A stretch of 64,000 nt of DNA from Macrostomum lignano (lineage: Eukaryota): the NCBI GenBank assembly GCA_002269645.1, contig NIVC01002472.1, positions 62,001 to 126,000 of the forward strand. Direction: 5' to 3'. The notes beneath the pieces are model-generated. The model did not search any database. It was not told where the DNA came from and saw only the letters and a list, made by a program, of their open reading frames with translations. Shown here one piece after another: positions 36,777 through 64,000 of this stretch (within the stretch, counting starts at the first letter, position 1; the number at the start of each line of letters is the position of its first letter). The translations under genes and the position numbers were made by a program.

Positions 36777-37802
36777 TTAGTAACGAGTGTGCCCTCCGCG
36801 AGCACGCAGCAAGGTAGAAATTCTTCGCGGCATCCCCAGAATAAGGCGCCGCAAACATTCTTGAGGAAGACTCTGCCAGGCATCTGTAATGGCTTGGCGC
36901 AGTTGCATGACATTTTGTGGCGGATTCTCCCGCTGAATTTTGCGCTTCAGAAAGTCCCACACATGTTCGATCGGGTTCATATCCGGGGACCGGGAAGGCC
37001 AGCGAAGCGTGCGTAGCTGCAGCTGCTCCTTCAGTTGTGTCACAGCGGCAGCTCGATGTGGCGGCGCATTGTCATCCTGAAGGGTGCAGTTTGCAACGCC
37101 TCCAAAGGCTGCGTTGGCAAAGGGCAAAAAATGAGTCTGCAGAAGATGAGCGTAGGAATCGGCGTTTACATTTGTGTCCAGAAAGACAATTTCCGTCCTC
37201 GAGTGTAATGAGATTCCAGCCCAGATATGGATAGACGCTGACTGACTGTCTGCACATTGCACATGCTTCTGCACCATCTCCTGTCGTGGTTCTCGCCACA
37301 CACGAGTGCGACCATCAACTCGGAAAAGGCGAAACCGGCTCTCATCGGTGTATACGACACGCCGCCACTGCTGCTGCCTCCAGTGAATGCGCTGCATAGC
37401 CCACTGCTCACGACAGGCAAAATGAGCAGGACTTAGCCGCGGTCGCCTGCGCATCTTTCGGGAGTGCAGCCCAGCTTCTCGGAGACGCCGTCGGATGGTC
37501 TGAGCACTCAGGATTTTTCCTCGCCTGCTTCTCTCGCCCCACATCAGACGGCCGGAGCAGAGTGGCTGGGAGAGTTGAGAGTCCTCTGACAGTTCGCAGC
37601 AGTCGTCGATCCGCCCAGCAGTTGTGCTGCGAGAACGGCCACGCTGGCCTCGACTTGCGTGAGCCACACTGCCTGTCTCTCTCGACTTAATCAGCAACTT
37701 CTGGATGGTCTTTTGGTTTGGGCCGAACTGGCGAGCCACTGCTCTAATAGACATCCTGGCTTCGATCATGCCTACAGCCCGCCATCGCTCAGCATCTGTC
37801 AT
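36777..37802 (-). CDS. Tc1 DD34E transposase, intact ORF (341 aa)
   Basis: YTDESRF, QDDNAPPH, then 34 residues to the E of NPIEHVW; N-terminal HTH-type region. Confidence 0.93.
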   Translation of the reverse strand: MTDAERWRAVGMIEARMSIRAVARQFGPNQKTIQKLLIKSRETGSVAHASRGQRGRSRSTTAGRIDDCCELSEDSQLSQPLCSGRLMWGERSRRGKILSAQTIRRRLREAGLHSRKMRRRPRLSPAHFACREQWAMQRIHWRQQQWRRVVYTDESRFRLFRVDGRTRVWREPRQEMVQKHVQCADSQSASIHIWAGISLHSRTEIVFLDTNVNADSYAHLLQTHFLPFANAAFGGVANCTLQDDNAPPHRAAAVTQLKEQLQLRTLRWPSRSPDMNPIEHVWDFLKRKIQRENPPQNVMQLRQAITDAWQSLPQECLRRLILGMPRRISTLLRARGGHTRY

Positions 37803-38206
37803 CTGCCGGACCACTTTGACGTACAGCAGGAAACGAAGTGCGCACATGAAAACTGAGTTGGAGATTTAACTCGCCCGTTACTCCAACCTCTATTTATTAC
37901 ACAGCTCAAATCCATTGTATGTCTATCTATTGTATTACATGTATATGCCCCCGCGGTGTAGAGAATGAGTTGCGCAACTTGCAAGTGAGATCCGAGAGAA
38001 ATCGCTCGGCGCAAAGGGTGGCAACTTTTCAATATTGCTATGTATGCTTATATTTAGCAATTTAGACAAAAACCGGTTGATAAAAGTCAGAAAATGTATA
38101 CAAATTAACAGTTGATTGCACAGTCCGGCGGAGCGCTCACAGAGTTGCAATGAGTGGGAGAGATGGAGAGAGAGAGAGAGAGAGAGAGATGAGAACAAGT
38201 GTACAC

Positions 38207-39395: not shown

Positions 39396-40792
39396 ATGGA
39401 TATCGTTGGGATATCGCCACAGTTTAACTACACGCTGCAGAGTCTTCTGTACGTCGTGCCAGGTAAGATATATTTTACAAAAAACAAGCCAGACTAAAAA
39501 CCGTGCAATTGCTTGTGTCTAGAAAGAAGCTTGCATTCGAACCCAATACCACAGAGATTACATTTCCTGGTTTGTTCCTTCTGACATTCGGTTCAACGGT
39601 GGGGACCATCGGCAATATCCTGGTTATCTGCGCCGTGTTCCTCCAAAAGGTGAGCAAGCAAATGGGCAGCACACGTACTCAAGTCAAGAGTGTAAAAATG
39701 AAAAATTATTTGTATGCATTTTCAGACTCTGCGCCACGTGGGCAACTTGTTCGTCGTGAACTTGGCCATCGCCGATCTGTGCATTACGATATTCGTTGAC
39801 CCGTTCGCCATCACTGGTAAGTCACTGCACTGCCTTCACAGACGTTGACTTCAACTACACAGACTATCCAAATCAAAAACGCAATTCCAGGCGTAATGCA
39901 CGGCGAGATCTACTTCGAGCAGCGAGTTGCTCTGTGCGAGTTCGTGGCGTCGACCTGCCTCACCTCCTGCTACTGCTCGCTGCTCAGCATCGCCGCTGTA
40001 GCCGTCAACCGCTGCGTCTTCATCTGCAACAACGCCAGCTACAACAGATTCTTCAACCGGCGCAGCTGCGTAGCGCTCTGCGTCTGTCTGTGGATTGTGA
40101 GCTGGCTGCTGCAGTTTCCCAACTTTGTGGGCTGGGGCGACTTCGCCTACGACAGGAAGAACTTTGCCTGCGTGTGGAACCGCATGGCTGACAGGTCCTA
40201 CACGATCTTCTTCTCCTGCTGCGCTGTAGTTGCGCCCAGCATTGTGATCCTCATCTGCTACTTTCGCATCTTCGTGCACGTCAGGCAGGCGATGGCTCGG
40301 GTGCGCCATCTGCAGCTGGGAAATGCCAGAGATGCGCAGGGCGGAGCTTCGAACAGCGGAAACGACCGACCTGGTGGCAGCCTAGACTCGATCCGCTTAG
40401 CCCGCACTCTGTTCATCGTGTTCGCCGTGTTCGCTCTCTGTTGGGCTCCGTACGCGGCTTTCGTGGCTCTGGACTGGGACGACAGCTTCCCGATCCACGT
40501 GCACGCTTATGCGATCTTATTTGCCCACTCCAACTCGAGCGTCAACTTCATCGTCTACGGTCTCAGCAACAAGGAGTTCCGCTCCGGCTACCGCATTGCC
40601 TGCGGCAGGCTGCTGCGCCTCATCTGTGGCAGCCGGTGCAAACTGCAGGGCAGCATCGGAGCCAGCACCTTCGTCAGCCAGAAGGGCACAAACCGCAGCG
40701 TCGTTATGAACAATCTCCCTAGTAAGACGACTGCTACGAACAACCGAGGGGGCATGGAGGATGGCAACGAAGCGCGCAGCAAAGACATGTAG
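39396..40792 (+). CDS. Melatonin-receptor-like class A GPCR, paralogue 3 (384 aa, intact)
   Basis: Exons 39396-39462, 39555-39649, 39726-39816 and 39891-40792; same motifs and exon sizes as the other paralogues. Confidence 0.92.
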
Positions 40793-45500: not shown

Positions 45501-46083
45501 AATGATCAAGGATCTGCTCATAAGTTAAATTCTACTCTAAATAAGGTTTTAAAGATGCTAGTCTCGGCAGAAATACACTCTTTTCGAAGAATAGATAATA
45601 TAAAGAATGAAAAAAATAGTCACAAACAGAGAAAGAAAACAGAACAAGAAAATTAGCAAGAAGCTTTGATCAATGCAGCCTCCTTATTTGAAAATTAAGG
45701 TGCAATTTTTATCTGAAGCTCCAGTCTGGGAGCTGAACACACTGTGTGAGCGTGTGTATGGTTGTGTGCCTGCGCGCCTGCGGAATAGGCAGAATAGCCT
45801 CAGCTCTGGTTGTAGTCGCTCGTAAAACGATATATTTTAATTAACGTAGTTTACAAACACTTGAACTAGACACAGATATGGCATTTACTGTATTCAAGAA
45901 AGTTAATTATCATATCCGTAGTCTGGTGATAAATGTTTAACTTTTATTTTGAACATTGACTTGCGCAGGTGCTCAGCGTGCTCAAAATTAAAATGAGTAC
46001 TTAAATCGTGGCTTATTAGAGAATATTTAACGGACAGAAAAACAGCATGGTAAATCAAATTTGTCAAGCAGCAGAGGGAGCAG

Positions 46084-46866
46084 TTACGACTTCACAACCG
46101 TGCGAAGATTTCCGCTATTGTCTTTGCTGCTTCTATCGACCTCTGAAGACGCTCCAGAAGACGAACAACTCGAACAGCTGCTCGAGCCAGAAGAGGAAGA
46201 AGTCTCAGTTGAAGCTGACGACGAATAAGGAGACGAAGAAGTGCAGGAATAAGACTTCGATGAGCTCGAGAGCGAGCCTGATGATTCCGATGCAGAGCCG
46301 GGCTCTGCAGAGAAGGGTTTAACAGCAACAACAGCGCCGTTATTAACAGTCTCTTGCTGATGCTGGTACACTGGTTCAAGACGAGGCGGTTGAAATCTGC
46401 AATTCGGCCGCTTATGCTGTTGCTGAAGCCCGGGTGCACAGTCGGACAACTGCGGCTCGCCAGCTTCGTCAGTGAGGATGGCATCTCGATCATTCTGACG
46501 GACACTTCCGCAGCTGCCAGCCGTGCTAGCGCCGATTAATGAACGCCTTCGACAGGTGCACCGGCAGCGGCAGAGCAGGCTTAGCCAGAGACAGACAGCT
46601 AGACAAGCAACTAAAGCGCCAGTTGCCATGGTTACTAAGCCAGCAATAGAACTAGCCGACAGCGAGAACCTGCCGCCAACAATTAGAAGAATGGCGGCAA
46701 TTAGAGCTAAGGAGACGGCTATGCCAGTCAGGCTCAGAAACAGCCGAGCCGGAGTGGAGCAGAAGGAGGGGCAGCGGCAGCAGCGCGGCTGCCGGCCAAG
46801 CCAGCTGGAGAGCGGGTCAGCGTTGCTCGCAACTGTTGGATGTTGAGTAAGTGCAGTTGAAAGCAA
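46084..46866 (-). CDS. Orphan ORF with two hydrophobic segments, Cys-Arg clusters and a Ser-rich tail; the true start is probably in an upstream exon
   Basis: 260-codon GC-rich frame with TM-like LFLSLTGIAVSLALIAAILLIVG and IAGLVTMATGALVACLAVCLWLSLL. There is no in-frame ATG before these segments. Confidence 0.55.
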   Translation of the reverse strand: MLSTALTQHPTVASNADPLSSWLGRQPRCCRCPSFCSTPARLFLSLTGIAVSLALIAAILLIVGGRFSLSASSIAGLVTMATGALVACLAVCLWLSLLCRCRCTCRRRSLIGASTAGSCGSVRQNDRDAILTDEAGEPQLSDCAPGLQQQHKRPNCRFQPPRLEPVYQHQQETVNNGAVVAVKPFSAEPGSASESSGSLSSSSKSYSCTSSSPYSSSASTETSSSSGSSSCSSCSSSGASSEVDRSSKDNSGNLRTVVKS

Positions 46867-48169
46867 TACTACCGAAGTCTATTAAGCAAATATCACAATA
46901 AAAACGAGGCTACTATGATAAAGAGCTTGCATTTCAAAGTCGTTTTTTGTGGGAGGCTTCATAAGAAATTTTACAACGCTACTACTGCATGGTCTTCTCG
47001 TTATATTAAGTAGTCTAGGATGTGAAAGGCGTGTCAACTAAAGCTCATAAGGTGGAGTCCCTAATTATCCCTTGGCTTGTTCTCCCCGTTCTCAAGTCCA
47101 ATTTTAGTCGCTTTTTTGCCAAACCCAGCTTCCTGGTGTCACTATGAGCAGAATGGCGTATCTTTTGTGTACATAGGTTTCTCGGGCTCCATTTTATGAG
47201 CATAAAGTTCATCTAGCTTGTTAGAAAGACTGTATAAATTCATCTGGTAGGTAAACGTTTTGACTCAATGGGGTTGTAGATCTTAATCTTTACTAAGATG
47301 CTTTTAGCAGAAACCTAACTAGACCAGGCAACTCACCCTCTCTGCAGTCAGGCACTTCGTGATAAATGCGCGGGCCAAAGTATTGAGGCGGCTTTGGCTT
47401 CTCAGTTGTTGATGAAGGCTTAGTCTGAGCCATTTTGTTTAACAATTTGGCAATCCTGTCAACTAAAATCTGAGTTTTGCCGAATTTTCTCTGCCTGCTC
47501 TGATCAAAGGTGGCTCAGAGGTCAGGATGCTACTAAGAATGCTCGCTCAAAAATATAGTGTCCGGTGGAAGAGATAGAGACCAACCAGACACTAATAAAA
47601 TACTAGAGTAGGTATGAGGATTAGGAATGAATTTTTAATGACATGTTTCCATGACATCAAAGACCTAACTGAACAAGAACAACATTAATTATTCAGCAAC
47701 TGACAACAGGGTTGGCAATCACTGCCAAGGAATAATTAGCATCAAGCAGAAGGAACAGACGTGGAGAATTTTTTATGGAATAGAATAATGCTATAAAACA
47801 TTACCTAAGCGAGTGCCATACAATTTTTTGCATCAGCTTCTACTGCTATAAGTAGCAATATCAGCCAGTGAACTAATAAAAACTGGTGAAAAACCAAAAG
47901 AATAACACCAGATGTAAGAAAAACTGCAAGATGTCAATATTAATTGACTAGGGATTTCAATGCCAGATTCCAAGATTTATTGGGATTCAAAATTCTGGGA
48001 TAACAAGCTTTTGGGATCTGGAATCCAAGGATTATGCTTCTCTAGAGTTGCTCTACAACCAAAATTTTCCTATATCCATCTGTACTCAAATTTAAATTTT
48101 CCCATAACTTTTAATGGTGTTAAATCCAGTGGCAATAGTTCTTCCAGCATTTAACATAATACAGTTAGG

Positions 48170-48420
48170 AAATAAAGAATGACATCTAACTCATAACTTA
48201 AAGGTTGGGGTTTCAATTCCCAAGCCCACTGCAATAATTTGTGTCTTTGAGCAAGACACTCAACTCTGCATTGCTTCAGTTCACACAGCTGTAAAATGGG
48301 TGCTAGTAAAATGGGTGCTAGTAAAATGGGTGCTAGTAAAATGGGTGCTAGTATCTAGTCCTTGGACTGAACAGTATTACGCAGCCTTCAGATGCATTGT
48401 GAAATAGCTGTAGCTGAGCT
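48170..48420 (+). mobile_element. SINE family A copy with an internal 15-bp unit repeated four times
   Basis: B-box-like GGTTTCAATTCCC, central TTGAGCAAGACACT..CTCTGCATTGCTTCAGTTCA..CAGCTGTAAAATGGG, and (GTAAAATGGGTGCTA)x4 at 48291-48350. Confidence 0.8.
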
Positions 48421-48643
48421 GCCAGTTAATAATAATTATTTTTATTATAAAATTATAACAACAGTTTAACCTGACTCATTAACAATATCTTTGCATTTGT
48501 AGTGACTGGCTGCTAGGCTAGCTGGTTATTCAGCAGCATTCACTAGCTTTCCCTAAGAGTGCTGTGATCCGCTGCATAGTAGCTCAGTCCACCTGATCTA
48601 GTGAGAGAGATACCCTGTGCTGGGCCTAAGTGTTTACTGCCTG

Positions 48644-49005
48644 ATGACTCATCGCCAGAGCAGGCGCGGGCAGCCACACTTAATGTCTTCCCACTCGCGC
48701 TGAGGAGGCGTAGCAGAATGACTCATCACCTGCGCGGAGTGTAATGGCTGCCTAGAGGGAGTAAACAAGATGACTCATCTGCCCATGTTCTATTTTTAGC
48801 ATAGAAAAGCACGTGACTGTGCACGCACACTGTGCGTGGCCACTGACCTTGAGTCACGCCACTGCTGCGTGACAGGGTTGCCTTATTTGGATGTTGGCCT
48901 TGAATCACGCGTCGCTTGCATGATTTTTGTGACCAAATAAGGAAGTTTCACGCGCTCACCGTATGAAACTCACGTGACTTTTGGGGGTCCACTCGGCTAT
49001 AAATA
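48644..49005 (+). promoter_or_regulatory. Cluster of AP-1 and E-box motifs ending in a TATA box
   Basis: ATGACTCATC three times (TGACTCA cores at 48645, 48719, 48771), TGAGTCA at 48850, CACGTGAC at 48810 and 48971, and TATAAATA at 48998. Confidence 0.55.
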
Positions 49006-50339
49006 CGAAGCATCTGGGAGCCATTTTTCTCCAGACTGCGTTGTCTCGCGGAGCATTGTGGCTGACTTGTGAAGCCTTCTCCGAGCTCTCCTCTCTCACT
49101 TCAGGTTTTTCAGGTTTTCAGGTTCGAGCAGCATTCTACTAAGACGATCAACTGTTGAGACATTTTTTCAGATTTGCCTTTGCTCCGAGCGACTTCATTA
49201 TTTTTTTTCAGGTGACGGATAGACAACTCTGCCAATGCATCGAGTCCGCACACCAAGGTGGCAGCAACCCTACCAAGTCAAGGCTAACATTTTAGGTTTA
49301 TTTTCAGGCAAATTGATAGGTAGTACAATGGTACTATCTAGCTACTTCAGGAGCAATGGGTTCTATTTCTAGGAACATCTTCAAGAACCCAAGAAAAAGT
49401 AAAACACATTTATTGCATAAAAATGGCTATAACTACATTTATCTTTACTTTAGCCCCTACTATCCAATCAAACAATGTATATGTGGTAGCTATCAAAATC
49501 TCTATTGATTAAGTCCTTGTTGCCAGCCTAGGGACTTGAAAGTTCCTCTTATAAAAGCTTTAAAAACTAGCAAAATTCATTAATTTCTAAGTTGCTCTAA
49601 CCCATGAAATCAAGGGCTCCAAAAGTCTTTTTAAAATATTAAAAATATTAAATATTAAATAATAATTATTTAATAATAAATAATAATATTATAATATTAT
49701 AATAATATTATAATAATAAACATGTTCACATAATCATATCTATATTGGTATGTTTGATATAAAACATTTGTATCTATAACCTTCAATAATTAAATTACCA
49801 TATATATAGCCATGGCAAGCCACTATGCTTTTTTTAGATTAAATAGTTAGAGAAATAACCAATAAACAATCTTTAACCTTATAGTTTTTAAAGAATCAGG
49901 GACATTCGAGTGCAATTCATGGCTGGTTGGCCAACCTGCTGCCCCAACAACAATCCTGCCTGTTACCAAGCTACATCTATACTAACACCATCATAGGCTC
50001 ACGTGAAGGCCAAATTTTGCTAGATGCATGGTACATCCGATAGACTATTTGAGTCATACCTACAAGAGTACCTCTGGCAGCACCTCTTCCCGAACAAGAC
50101 TTTTGGGAACTTCCTCTACTGGGTATCACATTATTAATATTATCCATTATAATCCATTTCAATTGCAGACTAACAAAATTAGGCCTAGACAGTTGCTTCT
50201 ATGTTTATCTTACTCCGTGTTATCCCTTATTATCTATTCTGTCCCTTACTAAGCTTAAAGTTACTTAAAAGATATTATTTTAAAAAAAAAATAATTTAAC
50301 ATGCAAAACTACAAGATAGCCAGCAAATCAATATTATAG

Positions 50340-50800
50340 GCCTATAGGTGTAGGAATGAGGGGACAGTGGGGCTATGCCCCCCTCTTTACTTTTTAAAGT
50401 GGGGGCCCATAATGGTATTTGGCCATTCCACATTTTAAATGTAGAATGTAGACTTTTTGCTGATCTTTTCTTTTACTATTTTGCTGCTTTGCATGAATGT
50501 ATTTTGCTACATAGCAACAAAACATAGCATCTGTGGTGCTAAAATGAATGCCTGTGGCACTAAAATGAGTGCCTGCAGTGCTAAAATGAGTGCCTGTGGC
50601 TGTAGTGCTAAAATGAGTGCTGACAATACCAATTCTAAAAATAATTGGCACATGATAATTTGCTTTTTCCATATAAAAATAGAAAAATCTAAATCTAACT
50701 AAATCTAGCACCGTGTGCGCCCCCCCTCAAATCCGCCACTGAACCTGGGTTAGGGCCTATCTGGCCCCCCACTTTTTGAAATGTTTCTAGGCCTATGCCT
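50340..50800. mobile_element. Probable nested MITEs with an internal minisatellite of about 21 bp (GTGCTAAAATGAGTGCCTGT)
   Basis: Imperfect inverted ends ATAGG(T/C).TAG.AA, G/C-tract subtermini, and 4-5 tandem units at about 50530-50622. Confidence 0.45.
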
Positions 50801-52035
50801 ATGAACCAATATGAAAATCAGGCTAACAATATGGATGGTCAATAAAAATACAATACAAATCCCATTGTATAATACTCGTACAGCCTATAGGTCCAGGTTT
50901 ACACGCCTAAGTGATTCAACAAGAAAAAGTACCATGGCATGGTATTAGTAAAATAAACATTTAGTCGATTAGAAAAGTTTATGGTGAGCACAACAACAAA
51001 AAATAATTCATCTAAAAAAGATTATTAAAGTTGTAAACCGTGTTTTTTGCATTTGCGATGTGTTAAAATATCTTGATTATTGACAGTTGGTATCATTTGT
51101 GTCAGCCTCGAGTGTCGAGTCAAATGCTCACGGCCTCACGTCAGAGTTCATCGTAAAGTGTTTCTTACAAATTACATATTTTAAAATTGTCAGTTAAAAC
51201 AATATTTAAATGCCGGTAAGTTTTGCTACGAAATCTTACAAAATCTACTTGGCTGATTACGTTCAGTTATGAGTGCATTTGTCAGTTGAACAATTTTTTT
51301 ACAGAGGGTTTGTGGCGGTTAGGATAATAACTTTATTCCTAAAAACATTATTGGTTTGTACTAATAATTCCATAGTAAATTTAGTCATACAAAATATTTG
51401 ATACTGTACCAAAATGCAAGGGCCGCAGTATATAACTGTTATATACAGCAGTGGTCCTTGCCAAATTAAAAAGACCACGTACATGTACATGTACATGTAT
51501 GTACATTGAAGTATACATGTCCTTGCATGTAGTGTTGCATTGTTACTAATTGGTAACGGTACGTGTACTTTTTGTATGCAAAGCTGCTAGTTCGTGGTAG
51601 TTACAGCATGTAATTCATATAAAGGTAACTCTAGCTCTTTGTCATGATATCTAGAATGATGAAGAAAACGAAATTTATGGGATAAAAGTTTAAGGATAAA
51701 CGTAATGGAGGCTATACAGTACATGTAGTTCTCAAGACTGAACAGCGCGCTTTACATTAGAGTACATAAGCATGCAAGTATAGTTACCACACATCAATTA
51801 AGCGAAAAACCATGCAAGAGCTTGTGACTTCACTATTAAGAAAATTTTGTCATTTTTTGCCACATGTTATTTCTACACAAGTCATAAAGTAAATAAATTT
51901 TATTGATTTTATATAATTAAATTTTTCCTTTCAACCCTTGGTGGAGTACGTGCAGCGCAGTGAAAAAATGAAGACCTTAAGCTGGCCCAATTTATCCAGC
52001 TGTATATACTAAATTCAAATGTTGCAAATATCATT

Positions 52036-52648
52036 TTAGCAGAAGTTTCTGAAATAACCAATTTTCCTGTCGAACTTCCATTTGCAGCGTCTGAAATTGC
52101 GATATACATGTACATGTAGTAGGTGTTAGTTCTGTCACTTCTCAATAACTCATATTAAACTGCAGTTTATCAGTGCTTTGAACTTACTCTTCAACATCGC
52201 CGCTTTCGTCATCTGCAGAAGTCTCAGACTCGTCGACTGTCGCGGGCTCTTCTAAAGCACCTGGAAAGTAATATGCATGAGGCAAAGTGCATGTATACAG
52301 AGGTACATAAATATATTGAAGCATCTTTTGAATTTTGCTATTGACTTTGACACCTGTGCACGGCCCCAATATTTGTCACTTTGTCTTCGTTCTTTCGGTG
52401 AGTTCTTAAATTCTGAACAACACCGTCACAAAAGCATGGATGCATTAATTAATACAGTACGTAGCAGTACCCTCGGTTGTTTCATCTGAATGCATAATAC
52501 ATGCATATCACAAGAAAAAAGCTGCTTTAAAGCAAAAGAACTTGCCATAATTTCCGTAGTTAGAATCGCCGTTGAATTCCGCAAGACTTGTGCGAGCTAG
52601 CATGACCACCAGAGACACGAATAGAAGGGTCACAGTGAAGCGGGTCAT
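52036..52648 (-). CDS. Secreted prepropeptide A (76 aa): signal peptide + acidic propiece + cationic C-x14-C peptide CKWKFDRKIGYFRNFC
   Basis: Exons 52648-52546, 52260-52188 and 52090-52036 (231 nt, in frame). GCCACCATG start, GCAAGT donor for intron 1, GTAAGT for intron 2, TTCCAG and TTTCAG acceptors, AATAAA at 51904-51899. Product: MTRFTVTLLFVSLVVMLARTSLA-EFNGDSNYGNYGALEEPATVDESETSADDESGDVEER-CKWKFDRKIGYFRNFC. Confidence 0.85.
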
Positions 52649-53334
52649 GGTGGCAGCGCAGTGGTTTCAGATGATTTAGCCAAAACTGTTGTAGCACTGG
52701 AAGCGCGTGACTCATCGGCAAAAATATTGCTAAACCTTCCACCCAAATACGCAGACTGACTTAAAAGGCCAGCCTTTTATTGTTGGTAATGCAGTAATTG
52801 TGTTAAAGAATTTTCAGCTCGAAACTAGCTCACGTGTCTTGGACTAACAACCGATGCTCACGTGTGCAGTACTGCTCATCAGACTCATATTCATAAAATA
52901 GAAACCTTTGATTGCCCTGGCTACTATGCAGTCATTATGTGCGGCCAAAACCAGAAAACGCAATACGCTAACCACTTCTCTAACCATTGCAATAGCTACT
53001 GATTGCTTTTGCAATTGCAGTTAACTTCAGTGCTCCAGCTCAATTAATGCAGAGTTCTCTGGTAGCCAAGGGGTATTAAAGAAAGAGCAATTCGTGAGGA
53101 AACTCAAGCACAGAGCTATACATTCTCATTCAGTGATTTCTACCACCTCTAATCCTCTGTTTTTAACTCAGTGTTCTAACAGTTTTGTGAGTGACTTTCG
53201 CAAAAAGTCTAAAGTCTATAAGACTTTTTCAAGTACATCATTTTGTATTTTCTTGGTTACTTAATAAATTTAAAGTTCGTCTTTAATCATATGCTGTAAT
53301 CAGATTTATATGAATTTTGGTCCATCGCATGTGG

Positions 53335-53712
53335 CCCCAAACTCGAGTATCAGTGACTCAAAACACGTACGAGCGTACGAGTCTCAGTTGCTTAAAACTC
53401 GAGTCTTCAGTGACTCAAATCACGTAGGAGTCCTCTCTCAGTTGCCCCAAAAATCGAGTCTTCAGTGACTCAACACACGTAGGAGTCTCAGTTGCCCCAA
53501 AACTCGAGTCTCAGTGACTCAACACACGTAGGAGTCTCAGTTGCGCCAAAACTCGAGTCTTCAGTGACTCAACACACGTAGGAGTCTCAGTTGCGCCAAA
53601 ACTCGAGTCTCAGTGACTCAAAACACGTAGGAGTCTCAGTTGCCCCAAAACTCGAGTCTCTCAGTGACTCAAACACGCGGTACGAGTCTCAGTGCCCCAA
53701 AGCTCGAGTATC
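53335..53712. repeat. Minisatellite of about 50-bp units, each containing TGACTCA
   Basis: Unit CCCCAAAACTCGAGTCT(T)CAGTGACTCAACACACGTAGGAGTCTCAGTTG; seven TGACTCA copies counted. Confidence 0.92.
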
Positions 53713-53893
53713 AGTGGCCCAAAACGAGTCTCATAAAGTTCGAATAACAGCATTCTGTAAGTCGTTCGCTTGTCTTATTTCAGCCGAAACTAATTGTGCA
53801 AACTCTCTGTGAAGCTTTAAGCAACTTAATTCGTCTCTTACCTGCATACGATGCTCTGCATTATAATCCGTCTGAAATAATGAACGCACCTTA

Positions 53894-56596
53894 CCCGGGT
53901 AGCATTTTGACGTCAATTTGCGGTTGCGTTGACGTCGCAAAAATTACCATCGCAAATCTATTCACCCCAGCCCGTCTTCTTTGATATTTTAGTTTATTTT
54001 TGCATAATTAGATGCCAGAGTCAATATGCATTTATAGTCATCATTTTGCTAGCTCAATTATACCTGTAAAATAGCAAAGAAGTAACGTAAAATATTCGTT
54101 GAAAGTAGGTTGAAAAATCAACGTAAAAACTTTAGTCATTATGGAACCCAAAATTTGACGTTTATATACTGCAGTACTATATAATTACGTAGATTGAATG
54201 ATTTTTATAACACTGAGAAAAGTAAGGGAAAAAGTAAGGCTCGTTTTTTTACAGTTTTATTTTGTTAATACGTGTTATTAAAATCGTATATTTGAATATT
54301 TTGCTGCATGATAAATCGCTTTATATCATAAGTGGCGTTGCGTTTTTATTTAGTTAGTGTTACCAGCTATATGAAACTTCACCTTCACAATGATATCAAC
54401 GTCATCTTTCTCCTGGTTGAATATTATTCGAAATATTTTCAGCTGCCATAAAACATACCAATAGATGTTTTTGGTATAGAATGACTTAAAGCAATACCAA
54501 ATCATGGCTGATTTAGCTACTACAAACTTTGCTAAATTGGCTGGCTAATAAAATAGTTGCTCCTTTTAATTCTACTACTTTCTCTCTCCCCATTTTCCTA
54601 TCAGTACTGCTGTTTGTATTGGAAATATACAATAATAATAGCCTGGCCTACCACAAGTATTGCATTGGTTACAACTATTAGAGTTAAACATAATTCCTAT
54701 CAAAATAATAATTGTCTGGAAATCAAATTCCTACATACATACAGTTTGCAAAGAACTGCTTGATTTTCAAATCAGTCTTACTCTCAGCCTAATCATATAT
54801 AATCATTGGACCTTAGATATCATATCCAAGATCCAATTTCAAATTTTTATTTGGAAGGTGCAGTTGTTCTAGCATTTCTATCATATAAAAAGCTTGGCAT
54901 ACTTGATTTGAAATTAATATTTTTTGTTTCTTAGTTTTACTAATCAGCCATTTAATTACATCATATCTATTATACATGCTAAGTTCATGTTAGCATTTAA
55001 AATATACTTTAGTTTCCTAGTTATCTCATTAAAATCTTTAGTAGGCCCTAATTTCTCATTTTAGCACTCTTAGAGCTACAATTTCCTTAACAAACTTATG
55101 CTTAGCTATATTCTATAGTAAAACATACATTTATTAATGTTTTGCCTCATCAAGTAGCCTATAGCTTGTTAATCATATTTAAACATATTTTAGACATTAT
55201 TGTAGCATTGCTGGGCACTATTGTTTAATTTGTGGTTGAGCAGATTTTTTAGCTGAATAGAAAGTCTGAAAAAAGTAAAAATATTTATAAGATTATGTAT
55301 AGAAATCCTAAGACTAAGAGTAAGGCTAAAGACTTCTGTATAATATAGTTTTGTATATTGTAATTTATGGATATATAAAATATAACTGTACAAATGCATA
55401 AGTCAAAATCTTTTTATAACCAAATATACTTTTTTCTGCCTATTTCAGATGGCCACCTAGGTGAAGAGGACAGGAGAGATTGCTACTATATGCCATCAAT
55501 GATACTAATTCCAACTCCTAGATGAGGAGGAGAAAATTCATTCCTATGATGACATCATCCCTGCTTATTGGAACAGGTTGTCATGAAGGGATGTCAGCTA
55601 GTCAATTTGAGGAAGGAGTTGTGGAAGAGGATAACAATTCACCATTTGATTCAGTCTCCTCCAATTCAGAGACTGGGGACTATCAAGAATTTGATGTAGA
55701 TCTTCTGAGTGAAAGACTAGGCAAAATGCAGCAATATGCAACTATACTCTCTATTTATTTATTCTACAGTTCTGTTGCTTGCTGCTTTCATCCTTATATT
55801 TGTTGATCAATGACACTGTTTTCAACATTCTATTTTGTTTTGTCAGTACTGTCGTTTTTGGCGCTATTGTAAATTTTTCAACTTTTAAAATTTAATTTAT
55901 TACCATCCTTTTCATAAATTTTCATTTGCAAGCATCAACTTAATTTGTGTTAAAATAACAATTTATGAAAAAAAGTAACAACTTCTGAATCCAATGTCTA
56001 CAATATGTATGTATACAAGAGAAGATGAATATAAGGCTTTGTCCGCATGTATTCTTGTTTAATATTTTCTGGTAAAAATGTAACTATTAGCCAGGGGCGT
56101 AGCCAAGGGGGGTCATTGGGGTCATGAACCCCCCCCCCCAGCTGTCTGATCCAGGCCAAATACAGGCAGCAGCCCCCCTCCCCTGTCGCAGAGGCCTAGC
56201 ACCCCGCCCCCGGTTGCCGTGTGACTGTGACCCCCGGAAGGAAATTCCTAGCTACGCCACTGCTATTAGCTTCTAGAAATAAGATGGATACATGTACTGC
56301 CTACACACATTTAAAGAAAGTTGACTTCAGAATGCAAAGATAACCATCAATTATAAAGCCAGTAACATTTGTTTTCTTAAAAGACATTATACCAGTCATT
56401 TCGTGCATTTAAAAGCCATTAAATCTATTAAATAAAGACGGTAAAATTTCGGTACATTTTGACGTCAAAACAACGTCATAGATCTAGGTCAAAATTACGT
56501 AAAAAACATCGACAGAATTGACGTCCTTTCGACGTTACACTTTGACCTATTTTCAACGTCATTTTGACGTCGCGCAACGTCACTTTGCTACCCGGG
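53894..56596. mobile_element. 2.7-kb non-autonomous TIR element with TTA TSD (PIF/Harbinger-like)
   Basis: 11-bp perfect TIR CCCGGGTAGCA, TTA on both flanks (53891-93 / 56597-99), and GACGT-rich subterminal repeats at both ends. No transposase is visible. Confidence 0.65.
56092..56262. mobile_element. 171-bp hAT-type MITE nested in the 53894-56596 element
   Basis: TIR CAG(G/T)GGCGTAGC and 8-bp TSD CTATTAGC (56084-91 / 56263-70). Confidence 0.88.
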
Positions 56597-56896
56597 TTAG
56601 CTGCCCCGGGTTGGACAACAGTGCCAACCCAAAGCACAAAAGTGAGACTGCAGCAGTAATTTAGACTGGATGATAAAATGAAAGAAGCTTTCAACAATAG
56701 ACAGAAAGTAAACCCAATTCCAGGCATAAACAAACGCTGCGGCTTCGATTCTCTGCCGCAAATTTAAAGCAAAATAAAAAGGGACGCACCACAGTGGCTT
56801 GCTACGCTACGATAAGAGCTTTCAATGCTCATAAGCACGCGCTCAAACCTGCAGTAGCATCAGGCGGGCAAAAGCTTTTTAAGTATTATCTACGAC

Positions 56897-56898
<2 letters not shown>

Positions 56899-56945
<47 letters not shown>
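56899..56945. repeat. (GATA)n microsatellite
   Basis: Perfect tetranucleotide run. Confidence 0.95.
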
Positions 56946-57285
56946 TGATAACAAACAAAAGCCTGACACTCCATTTGTATGGAAAGAAATATAAGCTGTG
57001 ATAGGTAACTTGAAGTAGCTACTTGTATATTTAGATTGTTTCGCGGTAACTTTTTGCCAAAAAACAAGAGAAGTTATACAGGTATTGTTTTTATTTTGTG
57101 GATATACAAGCTATCTGTGTAATGGAAAATTTAGCATCCGATCTTCGGGGGGAAAGAACTCTGTTAGAGAGACTTAACAAGATTTTTAAAGACGTTACTG
57201 CTTCTGGCTAACACTGAAGAAACTATTTGTTGTTAAACTAAATTTCGAAGTATTTGTCGCCTCCGTGAGAAGTGGCTTGAGCAGC

Positions 57286-57723
57286 TCAAGGACACGCCAG
57301 GGTGTGCCGCTTGTGCTTCCTTCGGTACACCCACCTGCATCGCCTGAAATTATAAGGGGGGATTTCAGTTGGTGCCAAATTAATTTCTACGTAGTTTTTC
57401 TGCGCAGAGTTAAGAGTTGGGTTAACTTGGGGAATATTTGAGATAGAAGACAGTGAAGCAGCTAGCTAAAAGCCACACTGGACTCACTTCTGAAGGTCCT
57501 CATCGTCATCGGCCTCATCAGATTCCAGAGCCGGTTCCTCGGCTGAAATGTTGTACGAAAAAATGTTGGCTATGCCGATAGCTAAAAACCTAATTTAAAA
57601 AACTCGATCTCCACTTATGCGGGTCTCACCGTAGTCATCGGCATAATCGGAATCTTCATAGGCCGAGCAGACAAACACAGCAGTCAGAGACAGAAGCAGC
57701 AGAGCCGCAGTCAGGCGGTGCAT
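57286..57723 (-). CDS. Secreted prepropeptide B (68 aa): signal peptide + acidic propiece + KR + cationic C-x14-C peptide CRWVYRRKHKRHTLACP
   Basis: Exons 57723-57630, 57542-57488 and 57343-57286 (207 nt, in frame). GTGAGA and GTGAGT donors, two TTTCAG acceptors, AATAAA at 57095-57090. Product: MHRLTAALLLLSLTAVFVCSA-YEDSDYADDYAEEPALESDEADDDEDLQKR-CRWVYRRKHKRHTLACP. Confidence 0.9.
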
Positions 57724-57764
57724 GTTGTTGCTTTGGCGTTGTTGGTGACTTGCAAGATTCTCAA

Positions 57765-57827
57765 TGACTCAGGTGCGGTTCGGGCTTGACAAGAAAAGAA
57801 AGGTCTTTGAAATTCGTTGCTTTTATA
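57765..57827 (-). promoter_or_regulatory. TATA box and AP-1 motif upstream of prepropeptide B
   Basis: TATAAAAG at 57827-57820 and TGAGTCA at 57771-57765 on the coding strand. Confidence 0.65.
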
Positions 57828-58358
57828 GACACACCCTATCACCTGAGAATGCGTGCGTTTGCGGTGTGGGTTCTGAGCACGTTTTCCAGAGCTCAGCTCG
57901 GGGCCAACGAAATTTATTGGACAGTTTCGTAGCACGTGAGGTTTTTGCCAAAACGTGCCCTACGGCCCTACCGCTAAGTGCTGCCATAAATTCTGTGCTT
58001 GAATGCAAAGTTTTGTTGAAGAAGCAAATGCGCAAATGCAGTAGTGCCTGAGATAGATGGAATACAAGCTTATCGTGTGTCAGAAAAAAACGTAATGCAA
58101 AAAACATAGAGACACACTTTATAGTGAATTTGAGATTTGCATCTGTTTGTCTGCCTGAACCCAACAGAGCCAAGTTTGCTGCAGAATCAAAGAGTTGCCG
58201 TAGAGCCAATGCGTGGACAATCATAAGGACGCTACACTTACAGATTTTACTGAAGCGAGATGGAAAGTTGTCAGTTTTTATCACTGACTAATCACTGAAA
58301 ATGAACGCGCATCTGACCGTCTGAGTTTCCGAATCGAGAACATACCCTGAGTATACGA

Positions 58359-58667
58359 ACAACGTACAACAACAACAAAGTACTTCACCTGCCAGCCACG
58401 CAGTGGCCAGAAAAGGGGAAGAAATCAGAGATCAGAAATCAGTCACACCCCTAGCTTGGTCCGGGGTGCCAGCATCGGTCAAAAGCCTGTCAGGATATCT
58501 GGCCGTTCGCCCTTGGCCTCGCCTGCGCGGTCCCTGCAGCTTGAGCAGCAGCACCTCATGCAGCGGCTCAGGGCAGCGAGCCTCCGACCGGATGACGTGG
58601 CCAACCAGTCGAAGTCGCCGCCCGCGCAGCTGGTCAGAAGGCTGCATCAGGCGTGCCCTCGTGTAGA
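58359..58667 (-). mobile_element. 5'-truncated RTE-like LINE 3' end, same family as 22872-23751
   Basis: Near-collinear with 22872-23185, with a (GTT)n tail and 7-bp TSD TATACGA (58352-58 / 58668-74). Confidence 0.88.
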
Positions 58668-59272
58668 TATACGACCAAGGACTGCTAGACTAGAACTATA
58701 ACATTCCAGTTGCCCTTGGGCGAGCATTGCCATGACGCAACGTCCTTCAAAAAATACTCGAAAAGCTTACTAACCACCGCTATAAACCTGATTAAACATT
58801 CAAGGCTGGGTGCAATTAGCTGTAAAAGTCGTGCCGCAAGATCAGTTTTGCTCTGAGCAAACTAAAAACCAATTTGAAGTTTTTTCTGGCTTCTTCAGGC
58901 CATATCACTGAGAAAATGAAATTTAATACTCTTAAGCAAAGCCAAGCTAACCTTGCACTAATTTCATTTTGGCTTGTCAAATTTTCAGTTTTGCCGTTTG
59001 TTAGAGGCAAATTCTTAGTTCTCAGATTACCTGTGCAAAGTTTAAAAAATTGACTGACTGGGCAATGCAAACACGGCTAATTAGTCACTCCCCCTCACCC
59101 AGCATGACAAGCGTTAAAATCATGAAAACCAAAGCATGCAATAATATTGTGTGACTGAAGCATCATTTTTTCCTAGACTATATTTATATTTTATTGTGTA
59201 GCTCTAACTAGAATTTGTGTATTGCAATAATACGCGTAATAATAATAACTGATTAAAACTGCCCCGATTGGG

Positions 59273-59520
59273 CCAGATGTGCTACCGACAGCTCAGCCGC
59301 CGCTATTGCGCGGCGCATCTGAAGGTTGCGTACGGCTGTTCAGTTCAAGGACTGGGGAGTCACCACACCCACCCTCAATTACCCCGCTGGGTGAACGAAG
59401 CAATGCAGGGTTAAGTGTCTTGCTCAAGGATGGATACAAATTGTTCCAGCCGAATCGGAACTCGAACCCCCGACCTTCAAGTGGGGAGTCAGACGCTCAA
59501 ACCACAAGGCTACCACTAGC
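59273..59520 (-). mobile_element. SINE family A, near full-length copy
   Basis: A-box TAGCCTTGTGG, B-box GGTTCGAGTTCC, then the conserved central and 3' blocks. Confidence 0.85.
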
Positions 59521-60727
59521 CATCTATTGCAATAGATCCGCTTAGAATTTGTTCGGAGGTTTGTTCTGGGTATCAGGCGTGTTTACGGCATGTTGTTATT
59601 GCACATTTAACTATAAACAATATATTTGCGAGCCACATGCAACAGCATTAGAGAAGCTTTAGCCAGGGCGATGCCAGCGTACATTTAGTTGGTAGTGCTG
59701 TAATTAAAAAGCATAACAGCCAACCAAAATCTTCTTGAAAGAACGACTATGACACGTGGGAAAATCAGGAAAATTTTCATTATTTACGAGCATGCATAAT
59801 GAAATAGAATTTAAAGACTGCCTATCAAGTAAGGTTACCCGTAAGTTTCCCGCTGTGAGACCAGTTGCTACCTGCTTAGAATTACTTCTCTCCTGTCTCC
59901 AGCTCTTACTCGCAGTATTCTGCGAAAAGCAGTGGGCAGCTTGAGACAGCTTTGAGCTTTGAACTCGAGAGAGAGCATGCTTGGACAGTTTTCTTATTCG
60001 CTTTTGCTCCTTTCTATTCGCTTTGCTTCCTACTTAAAATGACCGAATTCGAGCCTCTTTTTCGAGCCGCCTACCTCGAGAAGTCATTACGAATCATTGC
60101 GAATATCTTGAGAATTACGAGCATTAAGACAGCCTCACTAAGAGTCTTATTGAAGTGCATCTGAGCTGTGCCCTTGGGCTAAGAAGCGTCTCTGTCTGCA
60201 CCCCCTCACCCTAAACTGTTGGACTATGTCCATTTTGTATTCACGAATGTCAGTGAGACACTGAGCCAGACAGTTTAATTGCAATACAGCAGTTTTTGGT
60301 GCCCAGGGCATTTTCAGCATAAACTGCCTATTGTTATACTTTAACCGACTTAGCTGAGTGCTTATAGAGCTCCGAAATCATTTATGTAGCAGATTACGCT
60401 GCGCTGATATCTAATTGGTCTTAGGATAGCGAGTAACGACCAGCTTCATTCGCACTGTTTCGCAGTGCTGAATTTCAAAATCGTCGAAAATTGCTCCAGC
60501 TCTCAATTGATGCGAAGTTCTCTGTCAAGGGTATGGGATAGGACCATATAGGGAGAGGGGCCGGGGAAGCCCCCACGAAAACCCCACGAAAATCGTGCAT
60601 CTCCAAAAATTGACAAAAAGAGGCAACCAAGCTGGACAAATGACGTTTTCGAATGGCGAATCAATTTTTGACCGCGGTATCCAAAGAGCATAAAAAGCAG
60701 GGGTAGGAGCACCCTCCTTGGAAATAA

Positions 60728-61262
60728 GGGTGCCTATCAGAAGACAGAGGCGCCCACCAAGAGACAAAGAGACAGGGGCGCCCACCAAGAGACAAAGAGA
60801 CAGGGGCGCCCACCAAGAGACAAAGAGACAGGGGCACCCACCAAGAGACAAGTGTGCCCACCAAGAGACAAGTGTGCCCACCAAGAGACAAGTGTGCCCA
60901 CCGAGAGACAAGTGTGCCCACCAAGAGACAGGGTCGCTCACCAAGAGACAGGGTCGCTCACCAAGAGACAGGGGCAACCACCAAAAGAGACAGGGTCGCT
61001 CACCAAGAGACAGGGTCGCTCACCAAGAGACAGGGGCAACCACCAAAAGAGACAGGGTCGCTCACCAAGAGACAGGGGCAACCACCAAAAGAGACAGGGT
61101 CGCTCACCAAGAGACAGGGGCAACCACCAAAAGAGACAGGGTCGCTCACCAAGAGACAGGGGCGCCCACCAAAAGAGACAGGGTCGCTCACCAAGAGACA
61201 GGGGCGCCCACCAAAAGAGACAGGGTCGCTCACCAAGAGACAGGTTCGTCCACCAAGGCACC
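60728..61262 (+). repeat. Compound minisatellite of CACCAAGAGACA-core units (19-24 bp), becoming a 42-bp dimer in its 3' half
   Basis: Units CACCAAGAGACAAAGAGACAGGGGCGCC, CACCAAGAGACAAGTGTGCC, and alternating CCACCAAAAGAGACAGGGTCGCT / CACCAAGAGACAGGGGCAA. Confidence 0.92.
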
Positions 61263-62415
61263 AAACCTTGGCGTCCGGTTGCGGCCTCCAATAAAAGTTC
61301 TTGCCGCTCCTGCAGTTCAAGTTATAAGCAAACACACGGACTAGGCGGTGTCCGAAAGAATTATGTGTTTCAACAGGTCGGTACACGTACATGTACCAGG
61401 CTTCGATTTGAAAATATCAAATATTTTAAGAGCAAAAATTTTTCGTTCGCAAAATTCGAACCTATACCTTCAGATAGAGTTAAATTAATTCGTTTTTTTC
61501 TGTTAAATAGGCTGATATTTTTTTCTGGGTTCCAATGTTTTTTCGAGCGCAGTGCAACAAAAGTTTTTTTTGCTACTCCAAGTAGCACAACAAACTGGTT
61601 GAATTTTATTTCGCATTAAACCGAACATTAACCCTGGCTTTATTACGAGCTATCTTTCGTAATTTTTTTTGTTTTGCTGGGATCTAATAATTTGGGAAAT
61701 TTTTTAATACAGAATACAGACTTCATCTCTTAAGCTGCTTCTGGATATCGCCAATAATCTTTTCTGCAATTAAAGAGTCGTAAAACCAGCAGAATTACAA
61801 CTCTGTTTAAAACTGACTGCATTGGTTATCTTGTAGCCGTACTTGCAGACACTGTCTAGTCTTTTCCTATCATTCAGATATCCCCAAACAGCAGGTTTGC
61901 AATGAAATTTTTCTCGGCAGTGTAAATATTTGCGCATTGGGATATTTTACGAGCCGAGCAAAATCAAATGTTTCTATAGCTAACCCAGCTCAGGCTGATC
62001 TGATGGTGTTTAAACTAATCACGTTAATGCGCAGACGCTGATCCTGAAGCTGGTGCGCAGAAAATAATGATAAAAGTGCGTTAAACCGAAGAATACTGAA
62101 ATGCGTAAAGTTATTTTAACCTTGGCCTTCTAATCTCTGAATCTCGTCAATCCCCTGAGGAGATTTCACGACTTCAATCGGCATGACGAGTCGAAAATGG
62201 AACCGGAAGAGCTTCAAATTGGCGGTGAGTTGCCGCAATCTGGTTGACGGCAGTCAAAATGATTAAAAAATGACTTTCCACCTGGAAACGAACCGCTAAT
62301 AATTAGACTCTCCCTCCAGCCTCTAACCAGGAGCTTCCTCTCCTCTCGCCTCTCTCGCTCTTTCTTCCATTGGCTGTGATGCGGAGCGGGGGCTGGGATC
62401 TGGGGGCCGGGCAGC

Positions 62416-62452
62416 TTATAAACTGGGGTGCCAGCTTCTCCAACTGACTCAT
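62416..62452 (+). promoter_or_regulatory. Core promoter of the terminal GPCR
   Basis: TATAAA at about 62417, ATTGG (reverse CCAAT) at about 62368, GC-rich boxes, and TGACTCA at about 62445; the ATG is at 62511. Confidence 0.5.
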
Positions 62453-62510
62453 CTAAAATTTCTTAAACAGTGCGGCTGTCACACAACTCAGTAGTTGGCT
62501 CAGTTGCACG

Positions 62511-63875
62511 ATGTCATCTTCTGCTGTCACCTGCCACGAGGTGAACTCCACCGAGTATTGGGACCTCCTGCAGCTGCCCGCTGTCCGCGCCGGGCTCGCA
62601 GCTGTCTGGATCAGCGTCGGGCTGCTGATGTTCTTCGGCAACTTGCTGGTTGTCTGCACCATCTGTCTGCACAGAGCAATGCGAACCGTCACCAACTGCT
62701 ACGTGTTGAACCTGGCAGCGGCTGACCTCATGGCCGCCGCCTTGGTGGTGCCGCTGAAGGGCCTTCAGCTACTGGGACCCTGTTGGCTTGCGGCCAAGCT
62801 TTTCAATCGGCTGGGCTGCGCGTTCGTCACCTTCTGCATGATGGTGCTGGTTTTTGCCAGCCTGTTCACGCTGGTTGTCATCTGCATTGAGAGGTGAGTT
62901 GTTAGACAACTGAGAGCGGGTTCTATACTGATTGCATTGCCTACTATCTTGGACTTGCTTCCTTAGCTTAGAATGCTGGTTAACTGAAGGGGGCTTGGGG
63001 GCATGCATATCCGACTCTTGGACGATTTGACCTACATGTACTAGCTAGATGCAAAAATTAAGACAAATGTTAGAGCGTACGCATTGAAGGCTGCGTACGG
63101 CTGTTCAGTCCAAGGCTGGGGGTCGCCACACACACCAGCAATTACCCCAGCTAATGCTGGCACCCATTTTACAGCTGGTGAACTGAAGCAATGCAGAGTT
63201 AAGTGTCTTGCTCAAGGACACAATTTATTCCGAATGGGTCGAGAAAATTGTTCCGACGCTCTAACCAGTGGCTACAACACCGTGAGAGCATTTGGCGAAA
63301 GGCATATTAACCCGAAATCTGTTTTGCTAACTTGAAGTTTTGTCGTCAGACCGTTAAGATTCGTTTAATGGTTTGGAGCTCATTTGCTCAAAAGCAACTC
63401 TCTTACTCCTAAACCAGGTTCCTAGCCATCGTGCACCCGCTGCGCAGTCTGCTATTCCAATCAAGCCGTCGCACCTGCCTATTCATTCTGCTCACCTGGT
63501 GCGTCCCAGCCGCCTTCTGCCTGGTGCAGGCGATGCACCCGGCCGCCCAGGCCTTCCACAGCGTTAGCGGCTACGGCGACATGCGCAGCCAGCACTGCAT
63601 GGACAGCTTCAGCCGAGCGGCCGGTACGCTTACGTCATGTCCGCCTTCTGCCTGCTGTTCCTGCTGCCACTCTGCGTGGTGGTGTTCACCTCGGCCTCCA
63701 TTGTGCGGGTTTTGCAGCGGCCGGTGCCGGGGCAGAATGAGAGCAGCGTGCGGGCTGTCAGCTCCAGGAGGCATGGCCGCGGCAGGGGCAGCTCGGTCAG
63801 GGAGAAGACCTCCAGGGAGGAGAGCAAGAGGAAGGTGAATGAAAAGGGAGGTCCTGATCCCTTGGCCAAAAAAGT
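62511..63875 (+). CDS. Class A GPCR of neuropeptide-receptor type, TM1-TM5/ICL3; incomplete at the window end and with an apparent 1-nt frameshift
   Basis: Exon 62511-62893 and an exon from 63418. Motifs GNLLVV..MRTVTNCYVLNLAAADL and ER|FLAIVHPL. The frame changes near 63610-63625, between CMDSFS and RYAYVMSAFCLLFLLPL. The 3' exon boundary is uncertain. Confidence 0.85.
63084..63280 (-). mobile_element. SINE family A copy in intron 1 of the terminal GPCR
   Basis: Matches the reverse complement of 1-100 and the central block of 48230-48310. Confidence 0.8.
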
Positions 63876-64000
63876 TGGGGTTCACTGTAACAAGAAATTC
63901 TTGTGGTTTTCATAAAGTTTAAATTTTGTTCGCCTGGATACTCGTACATACCAGCAGGTGAGTATTTTCGTTCTCAGGGATCGGAGGAACCAACCAGTCT

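Follow-up and report, generated by a model that had tools for sequence, protein, structure and literature searches.

A two-gene tandem family of predicted cationic hairpin peptides found only in Macrostomum lignano

The window (the whole 64-kb stretch of Macrostomum lignano DNA analyzed here) contains an intact three-exon gene, gene A, on the minus strand (52648-52036). The gene model upholds the first-pass annotation, which had proposed a three-exon prepropeptide gene with an anionic propiece and a cationic, aromatic-rich C-terminal ring. The coding part of exon 1 (52546-52648) begins with an ATG at 52648 that opens a hydrophobic N terminus, encodes a predicted signal peptide (MTRFTVTLLFVSLVVMLARTSLA) and the beginning of the propiece, and ends in phase 1. 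Intron 1 (52261-52545) is of the GC-AG type, with the donor ATG/GCAAGT and the acceptor TTTCCAG/G, the slash marking the junction. Exon 2 (52188-52260) encodes the acidic propiece (ALEEPATVDESETSADDESGDVE...) and ends in phase 2, and intron 2 (52091-52187) is of the GT-AG type, with the donor AGA/GTAAGT and the acceptor AATTTCAG/A. The coding part of exon 3 (52036-52090) comprises the last base of the Glu59 codon, the Arg60 codon (52089-52087), the codons of a 16-residue ring, CKWKFDRKIGYFRNFC (52086-52039), and a TAA stop codon (52038-52036), all of these features being on the minus strand. The spliced coding sequence is 231 nt long and encodes a 76-aa precursor, MTRFTVTLLFVSLVVMLARTSLAEFNGDSNYGNYGALEEPATVDESETSADDESGDVEERCKWKFDRKIGYFRNFC.

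Intron 1 can be removed in frame (phase 1) only via the GC donor. Usable GT donors were sought nearby, and the frame of each one runs into a stop codon, so the GC donor must be used. Positions +3 to +6 of this donor are AAGT, the perfect donor consensus, and functional GC-AG introns typically compensate with a perfect AAGT at these positions. If the GC donor is left unused and intron 1 is retained, exon 1 continues into a 46-aa ORF (52508-52648, minus strand) ending in ...NYGKFFCFKAAFFL. A TATA-like heptamer, ATAAAAG, was matched on the minus strand at 52774-52780, which is 126 to 132 nt upstream of the gene A start codon, and an identical heptamer lies 97 to 103 nt upstream of the start codon of the neighboring gene B described below; the heptamer upstream of gene A is a candidate promoter element. 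In the 335 nt that follow the gene A stop codon, the sole canonical poly(A) signal matched is an AATAAA at 51899-51904 on the minus strand. No RNA family or tRNA was found overlapping the gene A locus.

The gene A precursor consists, in order, of the signal peptide, a 36-aa propiece, its VEER end, the ring, and the stop. Based on hydropathy and a check of positions -3 and -1, the signal peptide is predicted to be cleaved after Ala23, where SLA/EF fits the -3/-1 rule, and its hydrophobic core reaches a maximum Kyte-Doolittle score (9-residue window) of 3.1. The composition given in the first-pass annotation was reproduced by recounting, with 13 acidic and no basic residues over the 36 aa before the Arg, and a net charge of +4 and five aromatic residues in the putative mature peptide; VEER indeed lies at the end of the propiece, directly before the first Cys. 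The propiece has a net charge of about -13 and a Glu content of 22%. Tyrosines occur among the acidic residues in the propieces of both genes, in GDSNYGNY of gene A (52546-52590) and EDSDYADDY of gene B (57630-57660). Such a context is usual for tyrosine sulfation, and the acidic piece itself might perhaps be a modified product.

A paralogue of gene A, gene B (BOX15_Mlig016089g2; GenBank accession number PAA57557.1), lies in tandem five kb upstream in the same orientation (57286-57723, minus strand), with exons at 57723-57630, 57542-57488, and 57343-57286. It was spotted by a tblastn search of the gene A product against the window, which returned weak but colinear matches on the same strand (57723-57316). 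The product of gene B, MHRLTAALLLLSLTAVFVCSAYEDSDYADDYAEEPALESDEADDDEDLQKRCRWVYRRKHKRHTLACP, is identical to PAA57557.1, which is annotated as a "hypothetical protein." PAA57557.1 is encoded on contig NIVC01002472.1, the sequence of which overlaps window positions 47286 to 64000 and which assigns the window to the M. lignano Mlig_3_7 assembly. In both genes the introns are in phases 1 and 2 at homologous positions, and the AATTTCAG acceptor before the last exon is common to the two, whereas the intron 1 donor, equal in position and phase, is GT in gene B and GC in gene A. The gene B propiece has 15 acidic and no basic residues. In both precursors an Arg immediately precedes the first Cys and is followed by a C-x14-C ring in which the motif C-[KR]-W-x-[FY]-x-R-K is kept, the conserved part of the ring being its N-terminal half. 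A six-frame motif scan for an RC[KR]W start with a net charge of at least +5, including the Arg, returned genes A and B only. The putative mature peptide of gene B has a charge of +6, two His residues, and a C-terminal Pro.

The overall identity between the two precursors is 38%. Composition alone is enough to align signal peptides with one another, and likewise acidic spacers and basic peptides, and residues were therefore shuffled only inside the signal, pro, and mature segments when the similarity of A and B was assessed. The score of the full alignment was reached in 0 of 5,000 such shuffles (z of about 4.7), and the individual segments gave P values of 0.011 (signal), 0.011 (propiece), and 0.029 (ring). 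The gene structure and the paralogy of A and B are very probably real. No similarity between the two genes was found in introns or in upstream or downstream DNA, with promoter and untranslated regions not exceeding shuffled sequences, and the duplication is considered old because the noncoding DNA has no residual similarity. For an unconstrained sequence of the composition of gene A, the probability of remaining free of stop codons over 76 codons is about 0.013. In gene A the frame is still open throughout its 76 codons, the signal peptide and acidic spacer are preserved, and so are the two splice junctions and the distance between the cysteines. The persistence of the ORF, the splice sites, and the charge plan after an old duplication argues for selection on gene A during most of its history.

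When a profile built from A and B was run against a database of 5.8 billion proteins, it matched a single cluster, BOX15_Mlig016089g1/g2 of M. lignano, with g1 being PAA59732.1 and g2 being PAA57557.1, and the sequence words of gene A exon 1 occurred in no protein of that database. An exhaustive HMMER search of 1.84 billion representative proteins yielded no true relative beyond gene B. The two additional matches are long repeat proteins that align on "YNGDSNY"-like or acidic stretches and were rejected as homologues. Gene A had no family match in Pfam, where gene B produced noise matches only, and a sequence search of the PDB with A and B returned nothing. The peptide strings of A and B and the name "Mlig016089" are absent from the searchable full-text literature, and the name is also absent from the readable supplements of M. 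lignano and helminth papers. A and B are, as judged from these searches, a two-gene tandem orphan family found only in Macrostomum lignano.

No gene other than B is annotated within 10 kb, gene A lacking an annotation both here and on the homeologous contig. The GenBank annotation of M. lignano was built from RNA-seq transcripts, and noncoding and repeat-overlapping transcripts were dropped from it (PMC5730564). Gene B therefore has transcript support, and since whole classes of transcripts were dropped, the missing annotation of gene A is weak evidence against its expression. The small size of gene A and its GC-AG intron are likely causes of the omission.

The genome of M. lignano line DV1 contains large duplicated blocks with identities of at least 95% (PMC5730564). 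Contig NIVC01002236.1 carries a copy of window positions 45923 to 64000 with about 96 to 99% identity, and the homeologue of gene A is located there at 9844-10459, matching window positions 52648 to 52036. In that copy, the reading frame is shifted by 2 bp inserted into the signal peptide region and stops after 17 codons, the GC donor is destroyed by an insertion of 5 bp, and exon 2 has lost 3 bp in frame; exon 3, which encodes the putative mature peptide, is identical to that of the window copy. These indels are probably real because they are not homopolymer errors. In contrast to gene A, gene B is intact in both copies, which differ by three substitutions, one of them nonsynonymous (A6V), and no indel. 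The lesions imply that at least one copy of gene A is dispensable, and the recent genome duplication is being followed by the loss of one copy of the gene, with the window copy intact. The exons of gene A differ from those of the homeologue by 1 substitution in 228 positions, compared with 18 in 862 outside the exons (P = 0.15), counts that are too low for a test of selection.

The DNA between the two genes contains a 2.7-kb AT-rich insertion (53894-56596) that the homeologous contig lacks. With its terminal inverted repeats (CCCGGGTAGCA...) and flanking TTA target site duplications (53891-53893 and 56597-56599), it looks like a nonautonomous PIF/Harbinger-type DNA transposon inserted after the genome duplication. 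A 49/99-bp tandem repeat of about seven copies (53374-53725) is located about 0.7 kb upstream of gene A, and its copy number differs in the homeologous contig. Elsewhere in the window, a 23-bp unit (GGCTCTTTAATGTTTGACATGGT) is repeated about 252 times in a 5.8-kb satellite (30220-36047), where the AT skew and the GC skew are both strong. Mobile elements are represented by a Tc1/mariner-type DDE transposase with a helix-turn-helix (HTH) domain (36777-37847, minus strand), a second transposase HTH fragment (8264-8938, plus strand), and a LINE-type endonuclease and reverse transcriptase (22399-25305, plus strand) in a GC-rich block at 22 to 28 kb. A 567-aa ORF (5251-6954, minus strand) has a protein kinase domain (Pfam Pkinase; E = 3.6e-28). 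Three ORFs on the plus strand encode G protein-coupled receptors (GPCRs) of the rhodopsin family (13302-14453, 27892-28800, and 39845-40792), the last two of them closely paralogous. Among solved structures, melatonin receptors are nearest to the three, followed by aminergic and adenosine receptors, and a link of these genes to A and B was rejected, the receptors being melatonin receptor-like and distant.

The VEER at the end of the gene A propiece had been read as a toxin-type Processing Quadruplet Motif (PQM), which is defined by Arg at position -1 and Glu at positions -2 to -4 and is rarely found in unambiguous form outside spiders (PMC6832493). The formal fit of VEER to this definition holds, but such a fit has a 53% expectation by chance given a propiece with 22% Glu, and gene B has LQKR at the homologous site, a plain dibasic sequence with no Glu at positions -2 to -4. 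Given the LQKR of gene B, processing in the A/B family as a whole does not rely on a PQM. In the simplest history, an ancestral Lys-Arg convertase site would have become Glu-Arg in gene A. Cleavage of the gene A precursor would be expected after Arg60, on the basis of the homology of the position and not of the motif. The Glu-Glu-Arg of gene A has no upstream basic residue and makes a poor convertase site. With KR in one paralogue and ER in the other, the pair amounts to an experiment of nature, on a small scale, in how precursors are processed.

Dibasic sites also occur inside the rings, RK in A and RRK and KR in B, and the Arg-Lys at ring positions 7 and 8 is the sole invariant basic pair of the two paralogues. 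It is conceivable, though very improbable, that this Arg-Lys is a conserved internal convertase site at which the folded ring is opened and trimmed to give a two-chain, disulfide-linked mini-peptide. The chains would then be CKWKFD and IGYFRNFC in A and CRWVY and HTLACP in B, an assignment that we regard as just as doubtful. Such maturation can be likened to that of insulin and of spider heterodimers and, if true, would be a route not described in flatworms.

AlphaFold2 models of the two precursors were built from alignments of only two or three sequences and have mean pLDDT values of 62 to 64 (62 for gene A). The gene A model has a helix at residues 2 to 26, corresponding to the signal peptide, a disordered propiece, and a C-terminal β-hairpin with strands at residues 62 to 66 (KWKFD) and 71 to 75 (YFRNF) and a loop at residues 67 to 70 (RKIG), with a pLDDT of about 76. 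The central RKIG turn suggested in the first-pass annotation therefore coincides with the predicted loop, within the limits of such shallow alignments. In gene B, the strands are placed at residues 53 to 57 and 62 to 66, with the loop RKHK and a pLDDT of about 82. A and B are thus predicted to share one hairpin register with the invariant Arg-Lys at its exposed tip. The description of the mature peptide as amphipathic did not hold up, since the hydrophobic moments and the difference between the hairpin faces are within the range of shuffled sequences. The hairpin face difference gave P values of 0.27 (A) and 0.29 (B), the helical (100°) and strand (170° and 180°) moments gave P values of at least 0.39, and all measures ranged from 0.27 to 0.71; the helical, strand, and hairpin face measures of gene A were matched or exceeded by 27 to 49% of shuffles.

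As a structural class and not as homologues, the predicted A and B peptides resemble cationic hairpin peptides such as arenicin, thanatin, bactenecin, the lactoferricin loop, and the lipopolysaccharide (LPS)-binding loop of ALF. Like A and B, these are short (12 to 25 aa), strongly basic, and rich in Trp or other aromatic residues and in Arg and Lys. They form disulfide-closed β-hairpins with a basic turn, a fold that for A and B is predicted by AlphaFold2 and presupposes a putative disulfide. The C-x14-C spacing of A and B differs from that of arenicin (C-x16-C), thanatin (C-x6-C), and bactenecin (C-x7-C), and the segregation of amphipathic faces that characterizes hairpin antimicrobial peptides (AMPs) is not above chance in A and B. 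An arenicin-type, BRICHOS-derived AMP does not fit, since neither a BRICHOS nor any other Pfam domain was found in the A and B precursors. In precursor layout, gene A is similar to frog skin AMPs and the spider cupiennins and latarcins, which likewise have a signal peptide, an acidic propiece devoid of basic residues, an Arg at position -1, and a cationic C terminus. The acidic propiece of AMP and cytolytic peptide precursors is thought to neutralize the mature peptide (PMC6832493). Those precursors belong to other phyla and have no homology to A and B, and the predicted cleavage site is not the same in the two paralogues, being ER in A and KR in B.

The precursors of somatostatin, urotensin II, and allatostatin-C are also short and, like that of gene A, carry a C-terminal disulfide ring after a basic site. 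The net charge of A and B is far above that of these hormones, and the W-K pair is present in A only. Urotensin II and somatostatin are defined by the cores CFWKYC and FWKT in small rings (PMC3493602). The gene A ring, CKWKFDRKIGYFRNFC, has no F-W-K-T/Y, and gene B has R-W-V-Y at this place. The ring comprises 6 residues in urotensin II and 12 in somatostatin-14, and the likeness to these two hormones that had been noted for the Cys ring and WK pair of gene A was not borne out, given a ring of 16 residues, the lack of the core, and the replacement of W-K by W-V in gene B. A natriuretic peptide was likewise rejected. Natriuretic peptides have the 17-residue ring CFGxxxDRIxxxSGLGC, compared with 16 residues in A and B, and the only resemblance to this motif, a D-R-(K)-I-G fragment in A, is missing from B.

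We tentatively favor the reading that A and B are secreted cationic hairpin peptides, with host defense as the most likely role. The 76-aa product of gene A would enter the secretory pathway via its 23-residue signal peptide, and the 36-residue propiece would neutralize the basic C-terminal domain and keep it in solution while the precursor is transported. An endoprotease would cut after Arg60, where gene B has Lys-Arg, and the freed 16-mer would form a Cys1-Cys16 disulfide and thereby a two-stranded β-hairpin with the four-residue tip Arg-Lys-Ile-Gly. With a charge of +4 (A) or +6 (B) and its Trp and Phe/Tyr residues, the peptide would act as an extracellular defense effector on anionic microbial surfaces. 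Host defense is favored because a signal peptide, an anionic spacer, a basic site, and a basic, aromatic-rich hairpin are the standard build of an AMP precursor, and because the family is restricted to one lineage and combines a tandem duplication with a fast-diverging mature part. Lineage restriction, tandem duplication, and fast-diverging mature regions are typical of defense peptides.

Several observations count against a defense role and bear on the alternatives. Gene A is absent from a transcript-based annotation, has a rare GC donor, and is disrupted in its homeologous copy; amphipathicity, the hallmark of membrane-active peptides, does not exceed that of shuffles; the convertase site of gene A is poor and the internal dibasic sites are open to cutting; and the alignments behind the AlphaFold2 models are shallow. 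The precursor layout also fits C-terminal cyclic neuropeptides, and A and B might instead be precursors of a cyclic neuropeptide, hormone, or pheromone in which a convertase-released ring acts on a receptor, although we consider this unlikely. The motif C-[KR]-W-x-[FY]-x-R-K would then be the receptor-binding core, an equally unlikely assignment. The layout does agree with that of the precursors of somatostatin, urotensin II, melanin-concentrating hormone (MCH), and allatostatin-C, the N-terminal half of the ring is conserved, and gene B has a classical KR site. However, homology to a neuropeptide family was detected neither in Pfam nor in the HMMER search of 1.84 billion representatives, and the ring size and core of somatostatin and urotensin II are not found, nor is an amidation signal. 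The charge is very high (+6, with two His residues, in B), and neuroendocrine convertases would cut the internal dibasic sites. Neuropeptides are usually conserved, whereas no orthologue was found in the other flatworm proteomes of the databases, and the GPCRs of the window, which lie more than 11 kb away, are melatonin receptor-like and not peptide receptor-like.

The state of gene A itself allows a further explanation, which we likewise regard as rather improbable, namely that it is a decaying duplicate whose ORF is intact but which is no longer productively expressed after the change of its donor from GT to GC and of its processing site from KR to ER. Both the GC donor and the lost Lys are changes in a disabling direction, the reading frame and the donor are broken in the homeologous copy whereas gene B is free of such damage, the divergence of the gene A exons from the homeologue is not significantly below that of the flanks, and the gene is unannotated on either contig despite an annotation based on transcripts (PMC5730564). 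The last point is weakened by the exclusion of noncoding and repeat-overlapping transcripts from that annotation. Moreover, the window copy has no stop or frameshift and has good splice sites, and the GC donor is compensated by its perfect AAGT at positions +3 to +6. Although the split of A and B is old enough for all noncoding similarity to have been erased, gene A has kept its ORF, Cys frame, and charge pattern. It is still less probable that A and B are another kind of gland secretion, such as a toxin for prey capture or deterrence, a seminal fluid peptide, or an adhesive gland peptide, released from an acidic propeptide in the manner of spider venom peptides. The acidic propeptide and the formal PQM of gene A agree with the published definition (PMC6832493), and the product would be a small disulfide peptide of an orphan, quickly diverging family. 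The chance expectation of the PQM and its lack in the paralogue speak against this explanation, and a 16-residue peptide with a single putative disulfide would be an unusual neurotoxin. Orphan secreted proteins specific to glands are numerous in M. lignano, which agrees with a gland product, but we know of no venom apparatus in Macrostomum.

Gene A is a newly recognized, unannotated gene, and its family has no described homologue, while the architecture of the precursor is familiar and orphan small secreted peptides are common in animals. Free-living flatworms inhabit microbe-dense sediment, yet they are reported to be without the classical lophotrochozoan AMP families (PMC10414684), which would leave this role vacant and speaks for the defense reading. 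The A and B peptides are short enough for direct synthesis and assay. If they are defense peptides, they would represent a lineage-specific, cysteine-stabilized hairpin family in a model animal that is amenable to transgenesis and RNA interference.
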